Shown here: positions 2,523 through 64,000 of the stretch, in pieces | How the letters are laid out: each line of letters begins with the position of its first letter | Numbering within the stretch: position 1 is the first letter of the stretch | Program-made: the position numbers and the translations under genes | The notes under the pieces: model-generated | Told to the model about the DNA's origin: nothing | Databases searched by the model: none | Seen by the model: only the letters and a program-made list of their open reading frames with translations | Source of the DNA: Macrostomum lignano | Lineage: Eukaryota | Assembly: GCA_002269645.1 (NCBI GenBank) | Contig: NIVC01000029.1 | Span: 124,001 to 188,000, forward strand | Direction of reading: 5' to 3' | DNA length: 64,000 nt

Positions 2523-3627
2523 CTGGCATCCGCGCTAGTAGCTTATAGTAGCGGCAGCGAGAGCGAAGGCGATGCTCCCGAGGCTGCTGAGGCAGTGAAA
2601 AATTATAAAAGTACAAAACAAAAATCGAGCGAAATTTCAGGCGACAGTGATGGAGACTTTGATGATGCCAAATATGATGATGGTAAGGGAGATGTGTTTT
2701 TTTTGCTTTTCATATTTTCTAAATTTTATGTTCTGGGTGTGAAATTCAAAATTTCGACTCTACGGCCCTCAGAGTCATTATAAAAGCGCCCCAGAGTTGT
2801 TGCAGATAACACAGGTAAAATGGAAAAAGAACTATTGAAAAAAGTATCGTCCTTTTACTTTGGTAGCTAAATGTACATTGGATAAATTTACTCGTGAATA
2901 TCAAGTAGTCTAAGTTATTAAATATGTTCAACATTCCTCCCCAGAGCACAACTCAGACACTGCAACAGCTGAAGATGAGGAAAGCAAATCAACGGAAGAG
3001 AAACGAAGCAGCAAACTTATTAGCGGCAGCAACAGTTTTGGTCTGATTCAGTCTGCCTCTGACCATAGCAACAGCCCCAGCGACGAGGACACAGACGACA
3101 ATCAAAGCGACGGATTCGTTGAAATAGACGTCGAACTCGAAGACAGTGAATTGGATAGTACAGACTTGAAGCAGCAAAACAGCAATCGGCAGCAGCAACA
3201 AGCCAGTAGTTCCTCGAATCTATTGCCAAGTTTTGCGGCCGCATCAGCTGAGCACGAATCCATATTTGTAACCGAGTACCATAAAGCCGAGCGTAAGAAG
3301 TTAGCCGTATTAGCGCATCACGTGACCCCGATAGAAGCGGCAACTAATTCCGCTAGCAGAAGCAGCGGTTTAAAACGGATACCGCTGTGCAGACGCTTCC
3401 TATCTGGTCGATGCGATCGGGGGCACCGCTGTCCGTACAGTCACAGCGAGGAGGCCAAAGAGCGGGCTCTGGTGGTGCGCAAGCCGTCAGCGGAGAACCC
3501 AGCTGCTGACGGAGACAACAGGATGGCTAGGAAACGAGGCCACGCCGGGGTTACTGACAGCCTAGCTCCGGCTAAAAGATCACTGGCGGTGCTTGGGCCA
3601 CAGCTGGGCTTGCGCGGTAATAAATGA
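2523..3627 (+). CDS. Acidic/Ser-rich protein with one CCCH zinc finger; exons 2523-2682 and 2945-3627; no in-frame ATG before the finger
   Basis: Exon 1 reads LASALVAYSSGSESEGD...; GT at 2683 and AG at 2943-2944 join in phase 1 (G|AG). CRRFLSGRCDRGHRCPYSH is C-x7-C-x5-C-x3-H. Confidence 0.75.
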
Positions 3628-5520: not shown

Positions 5521-6745
5521 CGCTGGTTGACTGAGAGCTCTCAGATGATTTAAAGTTTGACATTTCTAAATATATAGACATTAAACTCTCAGCAAAGTTA
5601 TGTAATACTCTTAAAATGATTTTTCGTCGCTATTGCTGTTACGCTCGTAAATGAGTGGCCGATTTTCATACACAACGGGAATACCTGCCTTCTGCACCGT
5701 GTAACCTTAAAAGCGATTGCATAATATCATACTGCACTACTCTCGCCGCATATTATGAAGTTTTCTTACTGAACTTGCACCCGTTAACCTACCTACTGTC
5801 ATCTCGTATAACAACTTGCGCAACAGATGAACTATTTTAGATGCATGAATATGAGTATAATAAGATCTTAGAGATTTAGTATATTGTGAATGTTTCCTAC
5901 AGAAGTTTGATTTTATAACTCAAAAGCGTAAAATATTTTTAGAATTATTTTCATGGTGAGTAACGTTCATTAAAAAGCATTTTTACTTTGAAAATTCTCA
6001 GGGCTTTAGTGCGGTCCTCTATATGCATATGGCGCCCTGGTGCTTATACTCGTACGACTACATCTAAAATTAATTTCTTGACACGCACAAAATAATCCAA
6101 AAAACTCCTGACAGTCGCCCAATCGAAAGTAGTATCAGTAACTAAGGGTCTTTTAATCGTATCTGTGGTCCATTTTCTGAAGAGTATTGCAAAACGTTTT
6201 GAAATACATTAAACCCGTTTTTAATAAAGCCATGAATTTTCACTTAATACTAGGCGCGAGTCTGTTATCTTTTTTTCTATTATCAAACGAATGTCTATGT
6301 TGATTCAAACATGTCAGATTATAACATTTACTGTGCTAGCACATCTGACATAGGCGAGTAGGTTAGGTTTATGTGCTTTACGAAGCACGAACATATTGCT
6401 TGCTCTCTTTCTTCTGTCTGTCTGTCTGTATGTACGAGCGTAAATGTACGCGAACAATGTACTCCAATGAAATTTCTTGACTTTCGTCTCCTTGTCTGCT
6501 TTTCTCGATCTGAATATGCATGTAGCTTTATGTGCATATGTACTATTTTTAGTGCTAGTGTACGTACACTATCTAACAGCGGCGACTCCTCTTCCATGGG
6601 GGGTGGTTCTACTGTGTAAAAGGGAACTAAAAGCATACAATTTCCAGGCGATATTGACTAGAAAAGCACAAACTAACACAGCTTTCCGCTTTCAATCTTC
6701 AGAGAAAAAGAACCATAACATATTGAACTCGATATTACATATCCG

Positions 6746-45350: not shown

Positions 45351-53093
<7,743 letters not shown>

Positions 53094-56073: not shown

Positions 56074-59000
56074 TTAGGAGAGCATCACTGAGCAGATTTC
56101 TCGATCGGCAGTAGACGACTGCTCGCCAGAGCCAACAGACGAAGCGTTGATTGACACGGTCTCGCTGTAGCAGCAGCTCGACGAGTGGCGGGTCCGGCAT
56201 CGGCTGCGGACGGCTGGGGCGCTGCTGCTAGCTTTGGCGCTTCCGCCGCTGCCGATGGGCGCCGTTGGCTCGCGGCCCGATTGCCTGATAAATGAAAGAA
56301 AAAACGACTAGATATTCTATTTGAGCTACTTATAGTAGAATATCGCATTAGCTGCTTTGCAACTCGATTGAAGAATTTGAAAGGAAGAGGAAGCAGATGG
56401 AGGGAGTGGAAGCAGATGGAGAGAGTGGAAACAGAGGGAGAGGAAGCAGATGGAGGGAGAGGAAGCAGATGGAGGGAGTGGAAGCAGATGGAGGGAGTGG
56501 AAACAGAAGGGGAGAGGAAGCAGATGGAGGGAGAGGAAGCAGATGGAGGGAGTGGAAGCTGATGGAGGGAGTGGAAGCAGATGTAGGGAGAGGAAGCAGA
56601 TAGAGGGAGTGGAAACAGATGGAGGGAGTGGAAGCAGATGGAGTGAGTGGAAGCAGATGGAGGGAGTGGAAGCAGATGTAGGGAGAGGAAGCAGATAGAG
56701 GGAGTGGAAACAGATGGAGGGAGTGGAAGCAGATGGAGGGAGTGGAAGCAGATGGAGGGAGTGGAAGCAGATGTAGGGAGAAGAAGCAGATAGAGGGAGT
56801 GGAAACAGATGGAGGGAGTGGAAGCAGATGGAGGGAGTGGAAGCAGATGGAGGGAGTGGAAGCAGATGTAGGGAGAGGAAGCAGATGGAGGGAGTGGAAA
56901 CAGATGGAGGGAGTGGAAGCAGATGGAGGGAGTGGAAGCAGATGGAGGGAGTGGAAGCAGATGTAGGGAGAGGAAGCAGATAGAGGGAGTGGAAACAGAT
57001 GGAGGGAGTGGAAGCAGATGGAGGGAGTGGAAGCAGATGGAGGAAGTGGAAGCAGATGTAGGGAGAAAAAGCAGATGGAGGGAGTGGAAGCCACGAGCGC
57101 AAGCAAAGAGAAACTGGAAATATGATAAACGGGGCTAAAATGTACTTTAATATACTACAACAGTAGACTCTATCCCAGCACACACTGAGAGCTGGGGGTA
57201 CTGTGTATTCAGCAGCTTTCTGCTGTTTCCACTTTAAACTGGTCGCGTATTATTTGTCTCATATTTGTCTACTCCGTGGACACAGTCTAGCCTTGAAATG
57301 TGCAAGCCTTTGCACCGGCTCGTAGTCAGCTGATTATAGTCCGAGTAATAGAATACACTCAGCTAAAACAGGATTTTTCTAGTTAAGCTTAATATATTAA
57401 ATGGCTAAGAAATATTCATTCCGAACTAGTTTAGATAAGAAAAAAAATCCTGATTTTTTTAATTTAGTTTGAGAAGTGGCTGATTCACTTCTCAAGGAAC
57501 AGTAAAGTTGCTAAACTTAAAGAAGCTTTCTTAGAAAGTGCCTAAACTTCCACGAAGCTTTCTTAGAAAGTTCCGAAACTTCCCTAAAGCTTTCTTAGAA
57601 AGTTCCTTAACTCCCACGAAGCCTTCTTAGAAAGTTTCTAAACTCCTGCGAAGCTGTCTTAGAAAGTTTCGAAATTTTAACAAAGCTTTCTTAGACCTTA
57701 GACCTTCTTAGACCTTTCCTTAAGTTTTCTAAGTGATTCTTTAAATTCTTCTGAAGATTTTTTAGAAAGTTCCAAAGCTTAATGTAAAATTATCAATAAA
57801 TTCATTTCCAAGAAACCTGAATGGTTAATCCACCAGTTGTAGGTTTGATATTAAGCAATTTAATAGACCTCTTGTGCTAATAGAGAAACCCGCTAACCTC
57901 TATAAGTTCTTATCTGCCTATACAGCTCCAGGTTCCACAGGTTAAAGGCTGAAACAAGCTGTTGCATAAATTAATGTAATAGAAAATTCCACCCCAGTAA
58001 GCTTTCAACTGTTGGGTTGGCACATTTTTATTTAGCAGCACTGCTAAAACTGCAACGCGAGAGGGTTGCACGCGGTAAACTGGTGACTTTGTTGGCCAGT
58101 ACTGAGAAAATTACAAAAACACTTTTAGCCCTAGGCCCCAGGGCAGATTTATCTGTAATAATAATTTATTACGACAAGCCAAATATTCGCTACAAGATAA
58201 AAACTTCTACCTTTGTAACATTAACTAAATCCTTACAGTGTAGTAGCTTGTATTATATGCCCCGTGTGCAGCAAGGTTGAAAAATGCCTGTAAACCTTCA
58301 AATGGGTATTCTATGGCAGAATGTCGAAAGAAGTGAGCTTAGGCAAGTTAGGTTCTGACGGATATCTGAAGCCAACTGAAGTTCTTAAAATGAGTACCTG
58401 AGTCTCGATAGGCTTATTTAATGTAATAGAGATGTACGGTGTACATAAGCTGAGCAATGTTTTAACTCAAGAAATGGTGTACTGGAGTACTCAAACTCAG
58501 AAATGGTGTACTTTAACCCAGAAATAGTATACTCAAACGAAACAGAAATGGTGTACTCAAACTCAGAAGTGGTGTACTCGAACCCAAAAATGGTGTACTC
58601 AAACTCAGAAATGGTGTACTCGAACCCAAAAATGGTGTACTCAAACTCATAAATGGTGTACTCAAACTCAGAAATGGTGTACTCGAACCCAAAAATGGTG
58701 TATTCAAACTCAAAAATGGTGCAATCAAACTCAGAAATGGTGTATTCAAACTCAAAAATGGTGCAATCAAACTCAGAAATGGTGTACTCAAACTCAGAAA
58801 TGGTGTACTCAAACTCAGAAATGGTGTACTTAAACCCAGAAATGGTGTACTTAAACCCAGTCTCGATAGGCCTTTTTAATGTAATAGAGATGTACGGTGT
58901 ACATAAGCTGAGCAATGTTGTAACTCAAGAAATGGTGTACTGGAGTACTCAAACTCAGAAATAAGCTCGTAGTATATAGTATACTCAAACTAAACAGAAA

Positions 59001-61167
59001 TGGTGTACTCAAACTAAACAGAAATGGTGTACTCAAACTCAGAAATGGTGTAATCGAACCTAGAAATGGTGTATTCAAACTCAAAAATGGTGCAATCAAA
59101 CTCAGAAATGGTGTACTTAAACCCAGAAATGGTGTACTCAAACTCAGAAATGGTATAATCAAACTCAGAAATGGTGTACTCAAACTCAGAATTGGTGTAC
59201 GCAAACTAAACAGAAATAGTGTACTCAAACTCAAAAAGTGTTCTCCAAAAAGTGGATAATGAAGTAGCTGGAATGGAAAGACATAATAAAAAACAACAAA
59301 AAAATCAAAAATACTCACAGGAAGCACCGGAACTCAGGCTCAGCCAGACCGTTAGCCTTTCTAGCAGCCCGGCTATCCTGGGCTCCCAGACCGGACCAGA
59401 GCAGCCAGTCGCCAATGTCGCAGTCCAGGCCGAACTGTCGCAGACAGCCAAGCCGATCCTCAGTCGAATCTGTAACGCCGTACATCCAGACGTTGCCACC
59501 GCCGTCGCTCTCAACGGATGCCGCTGCGTCGCAATAGTCGCTAGCCGAACGAACAACTCCAAGCAGCTCCGGAGCGGCTACCGACATCGACACATTGTCG
59601 ATGCCAACTTGAAGTCGCCAACCGGAAAAACCGCCAAAGGCGGAATCGCCGACTGTGCAACGCCAGTCTCCTTTGTTGCTGTTGCCGTTCTCAGCATCGT
59701 CCTCAATCCGTTGCTTAGCAACCAGTCGGGTAGCTAAAACAATCGATCGGCTTAGCAGAGCGTCAGTCGAATCAGTCATCAATGCGTCAATCTTATTATC
59801 GACAATAAACTCAAACAGCTGATAGTTCAACTCGGCGGTTAGAAAACTATTAGTGCCGATATCTAGCAGCGACATCCGATGACCAAGCAGGCGGCCAACG
59901 CTGATAGCGACTCGAGCAGACTCGAGCACACCTGCGGCACCAACGGCACAGTCAACTACAGACACGCCGACAACGTTTAGACCGAAACTCTTAGCTGCGG
60001 CCAGTACGCTAGCAACTGTGCCTGGCTCGGCGCCAAGGGTGGCATCTCCCAGCGAGTCGGCGCCTTCCGGCCTGACCAGCAGTAGGGCCGACACGCCGGG
60101 CCATTGCTCCGCTAGTCGGGCAGCTTCCGTTTCGTTGTCAAATGTTGTCATAGCAACGCTGTGACGCTTAGCTAGATTAATTAACGAACGAGTTTTGCAC
60201 GGATTGTCCAATAGTAGATTGGGGCCAGTTAGACCCGATGAGATGGCGCTCTGTGGGATCAAGCATTAGCGTGAGTAAATTGTACATTGCAGAGGCTAAT
60301 AGCTGTTGCCTTCTCCTCCCTTTAGCCATTTAATTCATATACTGGATTGTATTCATCGTCCACTCTGTCTCCCTTCTCGCCTCCTTATCTCCCTTCTTCC
60401 TCTCTTATGTACCTTTTCTCCTCTTATCTCTCTTCTCCATCTCTTATCTACCTTCCCCCTCTTATCTCCCTTTACGCCCTTATCTCCCTTTACGCCTCCT
60501 TATCTTCCTTCTTCCTCTCTTATCTACCTTTTCTCCTCTTATTTCCCTTCTCCCTCTCTTATCTCCCTTCTTCCTCTCTTATCTCCCTTCTTCCTCTCTT
60601 ATCTCCCTTCTTCCTCTCTTATCTACCTTTTCTCCTCTTATCTCTCTTCTCCATCTCTTATCTACCTTCCCCTTCTTATCTCTTCTTATCTACCTTCCCC
60701 TTCTTATCTCCCTTCTCCCCCTTTTATCTTACCTACTCCCCCTCTTATCTTCCTTCACCCACTATCCCCTACATTCTTCCCTCTTTTCCATATTCTTACT
60801 GTTAATCTACAATAACAGAAGCCAAGCTGTAATATGTAATTTAAATAACAAAATACCTACAATCAAAAGCTACTATGTGTAGCAGCCTCACCGTCAGATC
60901 ATTCCTAGCTCGCACTCTACCACCGCAGCCTAGCTGAGCCAGTGCCCCAGTCAGTCCCGAGGCAGCGTGAGCATCAATCCTAGTTGTCAGCTTAGTGGCA
61001 ACAATATCGCCATAGCTAGCTAACAGACTGGCTCTAGCCCGCCACAGGGCAGCAAGATCTAACAGGGAAGCGGATTGGCAATCAGCTGGCAGTTGATCGG
61101 ACAGCCAAGCGCACGCTTCAATCTGGCTAGCAAATACCCGAGGCATCGGCTGATCTAGAGTCTTCAT
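56074..61167 (-). CDS. Catalytically inactive ornithine decarboxylase homologue (antizyme-inhibitor-like); exons 61167-60892, 60250-59319, 56284-56074; ~472 aa
   Basis: ODC-fold motifs DNPCK, TTFDNETE, GLNVVGVS, LLDIG and FGLDCDIGDWLLW; junctions are phase-consistent (1419 nt). Canonical YAVKCN, HVGS, GGG, EPGR and GPTCD motifs are all degenerate. Confidence 0.85.
56385..57085. repeat. 19-bp purine-rich array (intron)
   Basis: Unit GGAAGCAGATGGAGGGAGT. Confidence 0.95.
57520..57780. repeat. Degenerate ~30-bp tandem repeat (intron)
   Basis: Recurring AAGCTTTCTTAGAAAGTT(C/T)C. Confidence 0.75.
58400..59250. repeat. 21-bp array with a duplicated non-repetitive lead-in (intron)
   Basis: Unit AAATGGTGTACTCAAACTCAG; the ~100-bp lead-in occurs at ~58400 and ~58860. 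Confidence 0.92.
60350..60780. repeat. ~20-bp CT-rich array (intron)
   Basis: Unit CTCTTATCTCCCTTCTTCCT with variants. Confidence 0.9.
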
Positions 61168-61292
61168 TGTTTCAATCTGTTGCTCTCTCAAAGCTCTCTC
61201 TGAATTAGTAAGTTGTGCTTTCTCCGCTGTCAGACTTGAATTGGCGTTACTTAATTTCGCTGTCTTTTGCAGAGCCGCCGCCGATGCCAGCT

Positions 61293-61385
61293 CTAACCCG
61301 TTGTTGGGTCCGGGTCCCAGGGCGGTTCTCGGTTGTGATCAGTCAGCAGACGATTTGGATCGGGTGGTTCGGGGTCTTTGACCGC
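61293..61385 (-). promoter_or_regulatory. uORF with EPPW motif (AZIN/ODC uCC-like) in the 5' leader
   Basis: After acceptor CAG (61388-61386) the frame reads AVKDPEPPDPNRLLTDHNREPPWDPDPTTG*. PPW is at 61325-61317. No ATG in the visible leader. Confidence 0.8.
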
Positions 61386-61542
61386 CTGTATAAATAATTA
61401 TAGTAGATTGATTTGTGAATTAACTGATCATAATCACCTATCTGATTAATATATTTTATAGGACAATCATTAGAACAAAAAGGGTCTGTCAACTTAAGCC
61501 CGAGTAACCTCTGTACACAAATAATATTTTATTCTGCTCTCA

Positions 61543-62173
61543 GTGATGCGGACTGCTCTTCCTACCGACGACGACGGCTTTCTGCTGCGGCGACGCGTGG
61601 GTCGACGTCAACCGGAGAAGCGGCTCAGCGTGCTTGGCTACGCCGACGACCTCGCCTTGCTGTCCTCGACCGTCGAGGGCGCCCAACGGCAGCTGGACAG
61701 GCTAGTTGCCGTTGCGGCGAGCGTCGGCCTGGTGGTCAACACGCAGAAGAGGGCGGCGCTGTTCCAGGCGGTAATCGAGACCGTCCTGCTCTACAACGCC
61801 GAGACCTGGACGCTGACGGACTCACTCGAACAGCAAGTCGATGCGGCGCACGCTGGCCTGCTGCGCGCCGCCTTCAACAACGGCGTCGAGCGAGTCAACA
61901 ACGAGGCACTCTATCGCCGCGCTGGCCTGCCACGTCCAAGCGATCTACTGCGCCGTCGGCGACTCCAGCTCGCAGGCCATCTCATCCGCGCCGAGTCGTA
62001 CTGCCCACAGCCGGTGCAGGAGGTGCTGCTGCTCACGCTGCAGGCACCCTAACCGGCGAGGTCAAGCGCGAACTCGGCGTTACGTCGACTGTCTGCTGAC
62101 TGACGCCGGCGCCCCGGACACTGCCAGTGGCGGGGCCTTTGTTCGCACCCAAGCCATGAAGCGTGCCCTGTGA
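61543..62173 (+). mobile_element. 5'-truncated, internally deleted RTE-like non-LTR retrotransposon fragment
   Basis: YADDLALL RT motif; LLYNAETWTLT and RRRRLQLAGHLIR, typical of the RTE C-terminus. In-frame stop near 62050. Confidence 0.88.
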
Positions 62174-63198
62174 CGCTGACTTTTGCCATCCTGACAGCGT
62201 ATTTTCTTGTTGTTGTTGTCTGCTCTCAGTAACACCAAGACACTGAGTTTGGCAAAAAGCAACGAAAATTGGACTTGTAAATAATCCCTTTGCTTGTTCT
62301 TCACTATCCCAACTCCAATTTTTGTTTCTTTTTTTGCCAAACTTTCAGCTTCCTGGTGTCCTGGTCACCATGAGCAAATGATGAATCATTTGTGTAAAAA
62401 GGTCACTCGGGCTCCACTTTATGAGCTTAAGTTGACAGGCCCTTTAATGGTGATGCATGATACATATCAAGTCTTAGTTTGCCCTTCGATCCTCTCATCT
62501 CTGCTCTTGCCTCTCACCACTTCCTTCTTTTCTTTCTCCCTTTGACTTTTTTTCCTCCTGCTTGTCTCTTCTCTTTCATATCTCTTCTTCTAATGTTAAT
62601 AAAGTAACTAAAGTAATAAAAAATCTAATTCTTACTGAGATCTTCTTTGCTTGTCAGTTGGTTCCCAAGGTGATTAGGTACTGAAAGCTGCCTGACTTCT
62701 TCTACTTCTTTTCCTTTTGCCTTTATTTATTTATCTGAGCTTTATTTATCTGAACTTAAGCCTATAGGCTCCACAGTCCGCACTATCCTAATCACAATGT
62801 GTATATTGCTATATAATATGAAAAATGTTGTTTGAGTCCCTAACCTTATGGATTTAGAGCCCTCCCTGAATTGAAAGTGAAAACATTTATTTTAAGTATT
62901 CTTTGCTATTATTGACTTTTGCCAAAAATTCCTTTAAATTCCTTGTGGGTTGAAACCTTCCTACAACCTACACTCCAAATCATATAGTATAGACCCAAAA
63001 ATTTGGGCATCCATTGGCCCTGCATGACAAAATTTAGGACTTAGATATACATAGCAAGACTCCTAATAAAAAAGTGCACATGTACACCTAAGTGTGCAAT
63101 ACATAGAATCAGGTGAAAGAATTAGTATTAAGTGGAAAAAAGATTGAAAAGTTCATTTTTAAGCAAAAGCTTTCTGGTTTTTAAGCTTATAATATATC

Positions 63199-63561
63199 TT
63201 TTTTTATTAGAGGCAGGGGGTTGTATGCATCCTGGCGCACTTTAAGCGACATGGGCACACAACTGGCGAGAGGCTTTACTGCCCATTTTGCCAACTCCCC
63301 TGAGGAGGCATACAAGTGTGCGGATATGTACGCAGGCATATACTCACACAGGAGTGTACAGCGGCCCTAAATTTATATTATCGTTAGGCATGTACACTTC
63401 ACTGCTGCGCCTTGGGAGGTTGGCTCTCAAGGCCATTAATTGCACGAGCAGAGCCAAGCCGAGATTCCAATTCAGCCTCAGATTAATGTGACTGCACTCG
63501 GAATCGAGCCTGGGTCGCTGGCACACCAGAGCAGCTACGCTACTGCTGGGCTATGGCCCAT
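63199..63561 (-). mobile_element. Full-length tRNA-derived SINE with 13-bp TSD
   Basis: TSD CTTATAATATATC at 63186-63198 and 63562-63574; tRNA-like head and A-rich tail. Confidence 0.93.
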
Positions 63562-64000
63562 CTTATAATATATCATTTAAACAAATTTTCATGGGTATCA
63601 ACTTTTTTTACTATAAATATCATAGGCAAAAAAGACAAATCATAAACCAAATAATTAGCCAAAAAGATCCTATACACAATGTGCTTGCTTGCATGTGTAA
63701 ATTTTGCAAATATAATGCCATACATGTGGCAATGTTGAATTAAAATTTTGTCAACATTGGTTACAAATAACAAAAATTATTAATGTTTTAAATCAGGTGC
63801 ATTATGTGGTCCATCTTGTATTACATGCAATGTATAAATAAACAATAAAAATTTTTTTGTTTGCTTTGAATCTTTGAAACTAAATTATACACAAATGAAT
63901 TAACTAATCATTTAATATATACTATGTCATATAAGAATACTAAAACAGTTAATACACCCACCACAAAATAGTCATTTTGTCTATTGACCAATTTGAAAAT

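Follow-up and report, generated by a model that had tools for sequence, protein, structure and literature searches.

A putative AUU-initiated, Pro-Pro-Trp upstream coding region in the split leader of an antizyme-inhibitor-like gene of Macrostomum lignano

Introduction

Upstream conserved coding regions (uCCs) occur in the leaders of ornithine decarboxylase (ODC) homologues of animals (six phyla) and fungi, where they start at a non-AUG codon, mostly AUU, and carry adjacent prolines near the C-terminus (PMC2811004). For the uCC of vertebrate antizyme inhibitor 1 (AZIN1), initiation at AUU, a stall at a Pro-Pro-Trp (PPW) motif, and ribosome queuing have been described in work credited to Ivanov et al. 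(2008, 2018) and reviewed since (PMC2811004, PMC10855120, PMC11058473); in AZIN1 the AUU start has been verified, and for the family AUU is predicted more often than any other start (PMC2811004). The canonical animal uCC ends in PPWxxPS followed by a stop (PMC2811004, PMC10855120, PMC11058473). Here we compare with these systems a PPW upstream open reading frame (uORF) in the leader of BOX15_Mlig005245g2, a gene of the flatworm Macrostomum lignano, within a 64,000-nucleotide stretch of contig NIVC01000029.1 (positions 124,001 to 188,000; hereafter the window, to whose numbering positions refer unless stated otherwise). The original prediction for this DNA placed a PPW polyamine-sensor uORF in the leader of an antizyme-inhibitor-like gene and suggested that its start codon is donated by a spliced leader (SL). 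The comparison upholds an AUG-less, conserved PPW uCC of the AZIN1 class and speaks against the SL start. With a probability of roughly 0.8, the uORF is the exon-2 half of an AZIN1-type uCC that starts at an AUU in a separate exon 1 and serves as the PPW sensor of a degenerate ODC paralogue. A literature search combining uCC and flatworm terms returned nothing relevant.

The PPW frame and its conservation

Minus-strand translation of 61400-61293 gives LFIQAVKDPEPPDPNRLLTDHNREPPWDPDPTTG between two stops, in exact agreement with the coordinates and peptide first proposed for the PPW frame and its second EPPD. The 5′ stop is an in-frame TAA at 61400-61398, 12 nt 5′ of a splice acceptor, and the elements of the leader exon that begins there are as follows.

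61386..61388, minus strand: 3′ splice acceptor (cag) of leader exon 2, pyrimidine-rich ttatttatacag followed by G; predicted to be cis-spliced to leader exon 1
61293..61385, minus strand: exon-2 part of the uCC, AVKDPEPPDPNRLLTDHNREPPWDPDPTTG and stop; codons 19-48 of a 48-codon ORF predicted to begin at an AUU in exon 1
61359..61370, minus strand: second proline pair, (E/Q)PPD (EPPD here); PP invariant in 5/5 leaders
61317..61325, minus strand: Pro-Pro-Trp, predicted stall site, CCG CCC TGG; invariant in 5/5 leaders together with flanking DHN and DPDP
61293..61295, minus strand: uORF stop TAG, seven codons past the Trp; no Pro-Ser-stop ending

We compared five leaders from three species (M. 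lignano and two relatives, species X and species Y) and two paralogue clades, the sequences from species X (L001-L004) and species Y (L005-L006) being assembled RNA-seq contigs. Both relatives have the uCC in their mRNA leaders (L001-L003, L005-L006), with the peptide AVKDPEPPDLPDPRQPLSDHNSEPPWDPDPTTGRRYC before the stop in species X and ADRDPQPPDLVTGASKGSDHNRDPPWDPDPNRSPRG before the stop in species Y. A second clade of dead ODC paralogues, comprising Mlig015075 of M. lignano and its orthologues in species X and Y, also bears an AUU-PPW uORF, which reaches its stop as ...VDASAEPPECLPALVLADHNRVPPWDPDPFGT in the M. lignano genome (L007/L008) and as ...VDASSSEPPDSPKRSVGGDHNRIPPWDPDP in a species Y mRNA (L009/L010). 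Since this paralogue has a uORF of its own, the sensor would be older than the Mlig005245/Mlig015075 duplication or have been copied along with it.

Residues I1, R3, and K4, the first PP pair, DHN, and PPWDPDP are invariant in the alignment of the five leaders, the last two in the arrangement DHN-x-x-PPWDPDP. Over the alignable blocks, pairwise nucleotide differences fall on uCC codon positions 1:2:3 in the ratio 8:8:31, and the codons that differ are mostly synonymous in the uCC frame and almost never so in the other two frames. This third-position bias argues that purifying selection acts on the uCC peptide and not on the RNA alone. The three M. lignano gene copies were left out as evidence of constraint, since they are identical over exon 2 and the spacer and hence uninformative. 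Codon-level conservation, which the original prediction expected an alignment of leaders to reveal, is thus found across three species and two paralogues.

Leader exon 1

The orthologous mRNAs keep the frame open farther 5′ than the counterpart of 61385, across a strongly conserved block, ...KI(T/P)RKKKRRRSQRVNLYP(F/S). Similarity between the window and the species X mRNA L001 begins exactly at 61385, as fits an exon boundary. The upstream exon had been reported missing, and this holds inside the window: a pattern search and blastn found no counterpart of the orthologues' upstream exon in 61386-64000. Beyond the window's end the exon does exist, 6.36 kb upstream, on the part of NIVC01000029.1 that we label L014, which shows 0 mismatches in the 17,927 nt shared with the window and continues past it.

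L014 ~3339-3426 (window-equivalent ~67829-67742): leader exon 1, outside the window, 3.7 kb past its end

This exon reads ...tttcaATGGTTTCTTTTGGCTTCTTCACAGAGCCCGAAAATTACGCGTAAAAAGAAAAGACGTAGAAATCAAAGGGTTAATCAGTACCCTTTT followed by gtaagt, so that its end, CCCTTTT/GTAAGT, is a consensus donor, and the leader intron measures 6,356 nt (L014 3426 to 9783, the latter being window 61385). The junction in the species X mRNA (L001), CCCTTTT/GCGGTC, equals the end of M. lignano exon 1 joined to the start of exon 2, and transcripts of both relatives join exon 1 exactly at the equivalent of 61385. A second M. lignano gene copy (L012) has the same exon 1, 3.3 kb upstream. Similarly, the Mlig015075 paralogue has its own exon 1, a 6.5-kb intron, and a GTAAGT donor.

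L007 (NIVC01004130.1) and L008 (NIVC01002144.1): paralogue leader, exon 1 at ~3093-3179, exon 2 from 9713

Directly 5′ of the exon-1 donor, a 6-bp hairpin, AAGGGU/ACCCUU, is predicted (L014 ~3408-3427; alignment A4 columns 37-56). It is kept in the five leaders, where changes are single-sided and wobble-compatible, with no compensatory pairs.

The AUU start, leader geometry, and uORF1

Across both exons, the full ORF from AUU has 48 codons and encodes ITRKKKRRRNQRVNQYPFAVKDPEPPDPNRLLTDHNREPPWDPDPTTG before its stop, with ITRKKKRRRNQRVNQYPF contributed by exon 1 and AVKDPEPPDPNRLLTDHNREPPWDPDPTTG by exon 2. No in-frame AUG was found for the uCC, and the candidate start is the AUU. The sequence AAA AUU, with A at -3, is found in 5/5 leaders, and nucleotide conservation between the two clades starts at this point. 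In the paralogue clade (clade B), AUU is the first in-frame near-cognate codon, with an in-frame stop 14 codons upstream in L007. We infer that the AUU, as the conserved predicted initiation codon, is where translation of the uCC would start.

In this gene the PPW occupies codons 39-41; the other leaders have it at 41-44 and mouse Azin1 at 47-49. Across the leaders the Trp codon lies 120-129 nt from the AUU, a distance compatible with a ribosome queue. The visible leader had been described as lacking ATG, and we found none in any frame of 61385-61168, the main ATG standing at 61167. The whole stretch from AUU to the main start is ATG-free in 3/5 leaders (P = 0.001-0.02 each), and shuffles of this gene's AUU-to-main-ATG leader are ATG-free in 1.9% of cases; so improbable an absence in three leaders matches what a leaky-scanning design would need.

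The AUU itself is overlapped by a 14-codon AUG uORF, which we call uORF1 and whose UAA lies 5 nt 3′ of the AUU.

uORF1: L014 3339-3383 (~67829-67785 window-equivalent), L012 ~6366-6410, L007 3093-3137, L001 53-97, L006 ~30-74

It is found in both paralogue clades and all three species, conserved in length and variable in sequence (MVSFGFFTEPENYA, MVSFVPVAGPENYA, MVSFVSYSGLENSA, and MFKTVSINKQENYA, each followed by a stop). Ribosomes translating uORF1 would cross the AUU and terminate just past it, with two possible effects: shielding of the AUU, or a supply of ribosomes to it by termination-reinitiation.

The host gene and its product

The main ORF follows the leader on the same strand.

60892..61167, minus strand: main ORF exon 1, ATG at 61167-61165; gene BOX15_Mlig005245g2
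59319..60250, minus strand: main ORF exon 2
56074..56284, minus strand: main ORF exon 3, ending ...REICSVMLS and stop

The spliced product of the window is identical to BOX15_Mlig005245g2 (P0005; 472 aa), one of the family members BOX15_Mlig005245g1-3 of M. lignano. It matches Pfam PF02784 (Orn_Arg_deC_N; E=5e-12) in its N-terminal domain only, and solved structures of human ODC and AZIN1 match it with E~1e-12. When aligned with human ODC, HVGSG is replaced by V..VDCA, with loss of the histidine, and the GGGFPG loop by GTNSFL. Given these replacements, the product is probably an ODC-fold protein that has lost catalysis, and "antizyme-inhibitor-like," the name given to the gene in the original prediction, is a fair guess as a functional label. 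The fold with its replaced catalytic residues agrees with the name, while orthology to vertebrate AZIN1 finds no support: the clade comprises 3 members among 1.8 billion representative proteins. Beyond it, the next matches, a dead paralogue at a greater distance and ordinary ODCs, come at E~1e-38. Protein searches for further orthologues gave three clusters only, and an exhaustive profile search added generic ODCs and one paralogue clade. We regard the host gene, as judged from these searches, as a Macrostomum-specific dead ODC paralogue.

The three species of the clade share the C-terminus ...(D)ICCSV(M/L)LS (P0002, P0003, P0005; window 56095-56074), which follows a Ser/Ala-rich tail of poor conservation and may be a lipidation or targeting motif.

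Comparison with described uCCs and a proposed mechanism

The element shares several properties with the vertebrate AZIN1 uCC. Its host is an ODC homologue that has probably become inactive, catalytic or pyridoxal phosphate-binding residues being gone from the ODC fold as in the antizyme-inhibitor class, and mRNAs L001, L005, and L009 confirm that the element sits in the 5′ leader. In place of an in-frame AUG, it has a conserved AUU whose -3 position is a purine. It is ~50 codons long, with a peak of peptide conservation at (E/D)PPW near the C-terminus, and its PPW stands ~40-47 codons from the start in an AUG-poor leader. With other animal and fungal uCCs it shares a non-AUG start, adjacent prolines near the C-terminus, and a place upstream of an ODC homologue. 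Based on this comparison, the core interpretation of a PPW sensor uORF before an AZIN-like gene is well supported.

The element also differs from the vertebrate AZIN1 uCC. In place of PPWxxPS-stop, it ends in PPWDPDP plus 0-7 variable codons, and the Pro-Ser-stop of other animal uCCs is likewise missing. The five endings are PPWDPDPTTG, ...TTGRRYC, ...NRSPRG, ...FGT, and PPWDPDP, each before a stop; the species Y paralogue alone stops four codons past the Trp, where it ends in Asp-Pro and not Pro-Ser. Furthermore, it carries a second PP pair, also conserved, and an RKKKRRR block in its N-terminal part; the conserved 14-codon AUG uORF overlaps its start; the main-ORF frame overlaps the 3′ end of the uCC; and the element is known here from sequence comparison.

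If the AZIN1 model applies, most ribosomes would scan past the AUU without initiating and arrive at the main ORF via the AUG-depleted leader. The few that initiate at the AUU would pause at Pro-Pro-Trp when polyamines are high, since polyamines would interfere with eIF5A. A queue of scanning subunits would then build up behind a paused ribosome as far as the AUU, raising initiation on the uCC and lowering translation of the main ORF. As the product resembles an antizyme-inhibitor analogue, such repression would place polyamine levels under negative feedback.

Several points weigh against this reading or qualify it. Responsiveness to polyamines and eIF5A is read from the motif and rests on analogy, as does the antizyme binding that the product may have. 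The canonical PPWxxPS-stop ending is absent from all five leaders. Conservation of exon 1 and the RKKKRRR block can be credited only in part to the uCC peptide, since the block and part of exon 1 are under added constraint from the overlapping uORF1 and the possible hairpin. The junction of exons 1 and 2 is observed in the orthologous mRNAs and predicted from them for the M. lignano locus. Finally, an open main frame overlapping the uCC hints at an additional or different route to the main ORF.

Overlap of the main frame and alternative explanations

The overlap concerns the frame of the main ORF, which is -1 relative to the uCC.

61168..61338, minus strand: main-ORF frame, stop-free from just 5′ of the PPW to the ATG; L001 176-343; L005 184-378
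61200..61250, minus strand: 51-nt candidate intron of the original prediction, GTAACG...TTCAG with GT..AG ends; proposed from sequence only

The main frame is stop-free in all three species of the lineage, against 3-6 stops in the other frames; with the part downstream of AUGs excluded, this has a combined chance of ~2e-3. In species Y, no in-frame AUG precedes the conserved N-terminus, the earliest AUGs lying in other frames. All three species have, as the first near-cognate codon of the main frame, a CTG within the PPW codons (CCG CCC UGG G; 61320-61318 in the window), flanked by G at both -3 and +4. Codon usage of the spacer is coding-like in species X and Y and not in M. lignano, and the extension 61338-61168 would yield predicted tryptic peptides including TAKLSNANSSLTAEK and AQLTNSER. 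We found no protein-level conservation of the extension, substitutions in the overlap being non-synonymous in the main frame, and in the Mlig015075 paralogue clade the uCC is present and the open extension absent. For the candidate intron at 61250-61200, no evidence was found that supports or excludes splicing; its length is a multiple of three, the main frame through it is stop-free, and model P0007 reads through it.

The simplest account of these data, a tentative one, would be a non-AUG N-terminal extension. It would resemble described extensions (Ivanov et al. 2011, PMC3105428) in three respects: the open frame reaches beyond the annotated AUG in the 5′ direction, its first near-cognate codon is a CUG in strong context, and one species lacks an AUG. 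The extension sequence differs from them in not being conserved, with coding-like codon usage in 2/3 species. A wiring of the sensor that departs from AZIN1 is possible but doubtful in this gene lineage: besides its AUG, the main ORF would be entered through the -1 frame opening within the uCC, with the CUG of the PPW codons as first candidate start. If it does occur, the stall site and the start site of the main frame would coincide physically, and uORF1, which ends 5 nt after the AUU, would add termination-coupled control of uCC initiation. A -1 shift at the stall may be a more exotic form of the same idea.

Among explanations that would replace the polyamine sensor, the one that survives best is a conserved peptide uORF with another role: a constitutive repressor, a sensor of another signal, a functional micropeptide, or a stretch conserved for its RNA structure. 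The departure of the uCC ending from PPWxxPS would fit it, as would the ability of the exon-1 part to form the conserved 6-bp hairpin and the basic RKKKRRR block, for which the literature compared describes no counterpart. However, the third-position bias reflects selection on the peptide, whose invariant core is an eIF5A-dependent PPW placed in leaders of a polyamine-pathway homologue in two paralogues, and the AUU start and AUG-depleted leader fit a sensor design. We consider an alternative role of this kind unlikely.

Less probable still is that the ODC-like protein begins with the PPW segment, fused either by splicing, as in the UniProt/MAKER models, or by a -1 frameshift at or after the PPW stall. 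Three database models do begin with AVKDPE fused to the main ORF; the main frame is -1 of the uCC and open from just 5′ of the PPW in all three species, by a chance of ~2e-3; and the species Y main ORF has no in-frame AUG. Against splicing, the "introns" differ from model to model, all three have poor donors, and one measures 5 nt, as is typical of artefacts of frame fixing; the orthologous mRNAs are unspliced between the uCC and the main ORF, and species X has no GT where such a splice would need one. A splice fusion was rejected on these grounds, its candidate sites not being conserved. A programmed -1 frameshift was rejected as well: the conserved overlap, GAY CAC AAC ... CCG CCC TGG GAC CCN GAC CCN, contains no X_XXY_YYZ heptamer or conserved slip site, and a +1 slip on CCC_U would enter a frame with stops. 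Both forms are further opposed by the non-synonymous substitutions in the overlap and by the paralogue clade, which has the uCC without the open extension. The locus does resemble the antizyme +1 frameshift in belonging to the polyamine pathway, in having two overlapping frames, and in a possible polyamine-sensitive pause at the overlap. It differs in that a shift of -1 (or +2) would be needed and that neither a conserved shift site nor a stop-linked site of the UCC_UGA type is present, so the parallel is unsupported.

The SL start proposed in the original prediction would make the AG at 61386 a trans-splice acceptor, with the terminal AUG of the 35-nt M. lignano SL opening the PPW ORF (MAVKDPE...). 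The 3′-terminal AUG of flatworm SLs reportedly serves as an initiator, in work attributed to Cheng et al. 2006. The M. lignano SL, CGGTCTCTTACTGCGAAGACTCAATTTATTGCATG, does end in ATG (PMC8629364). The phase claimed for it is correct: the uORF is in phase 0 with the acceptor, SL plus exon 2 would read MAVKDPEPPD...PPWDPDPTTG-stop, and ~20-30% of M. lignano genes are SL trans-spliced. Unlike the acceptors of the flatworm SL-AUG system, however, this one has a conserved cis partner. Exon 1 with its consensus donor GTAAGT lies at this very locus and in the second gene copy. The other species and the paralogue keep it too, and orthologous mRNAs join it at the position of this acceptor, showing the cis junction and no SL. 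An M. lignano-type SL, whether at the start or elsewhere in sense, is missing from all nine related transcript contigs (0/9). An efficient AUG near the cap would undo the weak-start logic of the sensor, an SL start would lose 18 conserved codons, and agreement in phase is expected by chance in 1/3 of cases. An SL-donated start is therefore highly improbable, and we regard the phase match as a coincidence that the uCC start does not need; minor trans-splicing use of the acceptor may nevertheless occur in M. lignano.

The 5′ ends of L005 and L006 were considered as a spliced leader and rejected, having no match to the Macrostomum SL. In species Y, an SL-like ...ATTTATTGCATG was found on an unrelated antisense fragment, which suggests that the species has a Macrostomum-type SL, or a variant of it, that its uCC mRNAs lack. 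On the species Y contig L009 (2067-2008, minus strand), an Illumina adapter is followed by ...AATGAAGCATTTATTGCATG/TCTTCG, an SL-like 3′ end on an antisense neighbouring transcript.

Annotation and surroundings of the locus

The AZIN1-type uCC reading also bears on public annotation. UniProt entries A0A1I8GZH3 (P0001), A0A1I8GEF0 (P0006), and A0A1I8H2L5 (P0007) start with AVKDPE and fuse the uORF to the enzyme through their three different "introns." Given the open overlapping frames, these introns are gene-finder artefacts, and the fusions in the three models stand corrected; the C-terminus of P0001 is also wrong. GenBank models (PAA93341 and others) begin at the ATG. For genome scanning there is a further lesson: the "missing" upstream exon sat past a 6.4-kb leader intron filled with transposable elements.

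61543..62052, plus strand: reverse-transcriptase fragment with a YADD motif, inside the leader intron; RVT_1 E=2.7e-4, below the Pfam cut-off

This fragment is intron filler and lies outside the sensor. Inverted repeats of ~50 nt (86-95% complementary), at 61479-61525 and 62385-62445, bracket it, and the whole looks like a foldback element or one flanked by terminal inverted repeats, with a piece of a long interspersed nuclear element inside. The introns of the ODC-like gene (window 60350-60830, 58420-59260, and 56390-57130) are full of long tandem satellite arrays, of which another lies at 52336-52560; the satellite types (GAGATAAGAG..., GAGTTTGAGTACACCATTTCT, and CTCCCTCCATCTGCTTCCA) are a source of long spurious ORFs. 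The adjoining gene, convergent with the ODC-like gene, encodes a leukotriene-A4-hydrolase/M1-peptidase homologue (window 52761-53093, plus strand; L014 18075-25094, minus strand), with a Leuk-A4-hydro_C match at E=1.4e-30.

Implications

The AZIN1-type uCC predicted here would extend the eIF5A/polyamine PPW sensor to macrostomid flatworms, where it stands before two independently derived, catalytically dead ODC paralogues. Its presence on both argues, as far as sequence comparison can, that the uCC is older than antizyme-inhibitor-like genes or is recurrently recruited by them. The overlapping uORF1, the DPDP tail, and a main frame that overlaps the uCC and is AUG-less in one species are new, lineage-specific features. 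Since M. lignano is tractable for transgenesis, the AUU, the PPW stall, and uORF1 are open to tests in vivo, as is the AUG-less main ORF of its sister species.

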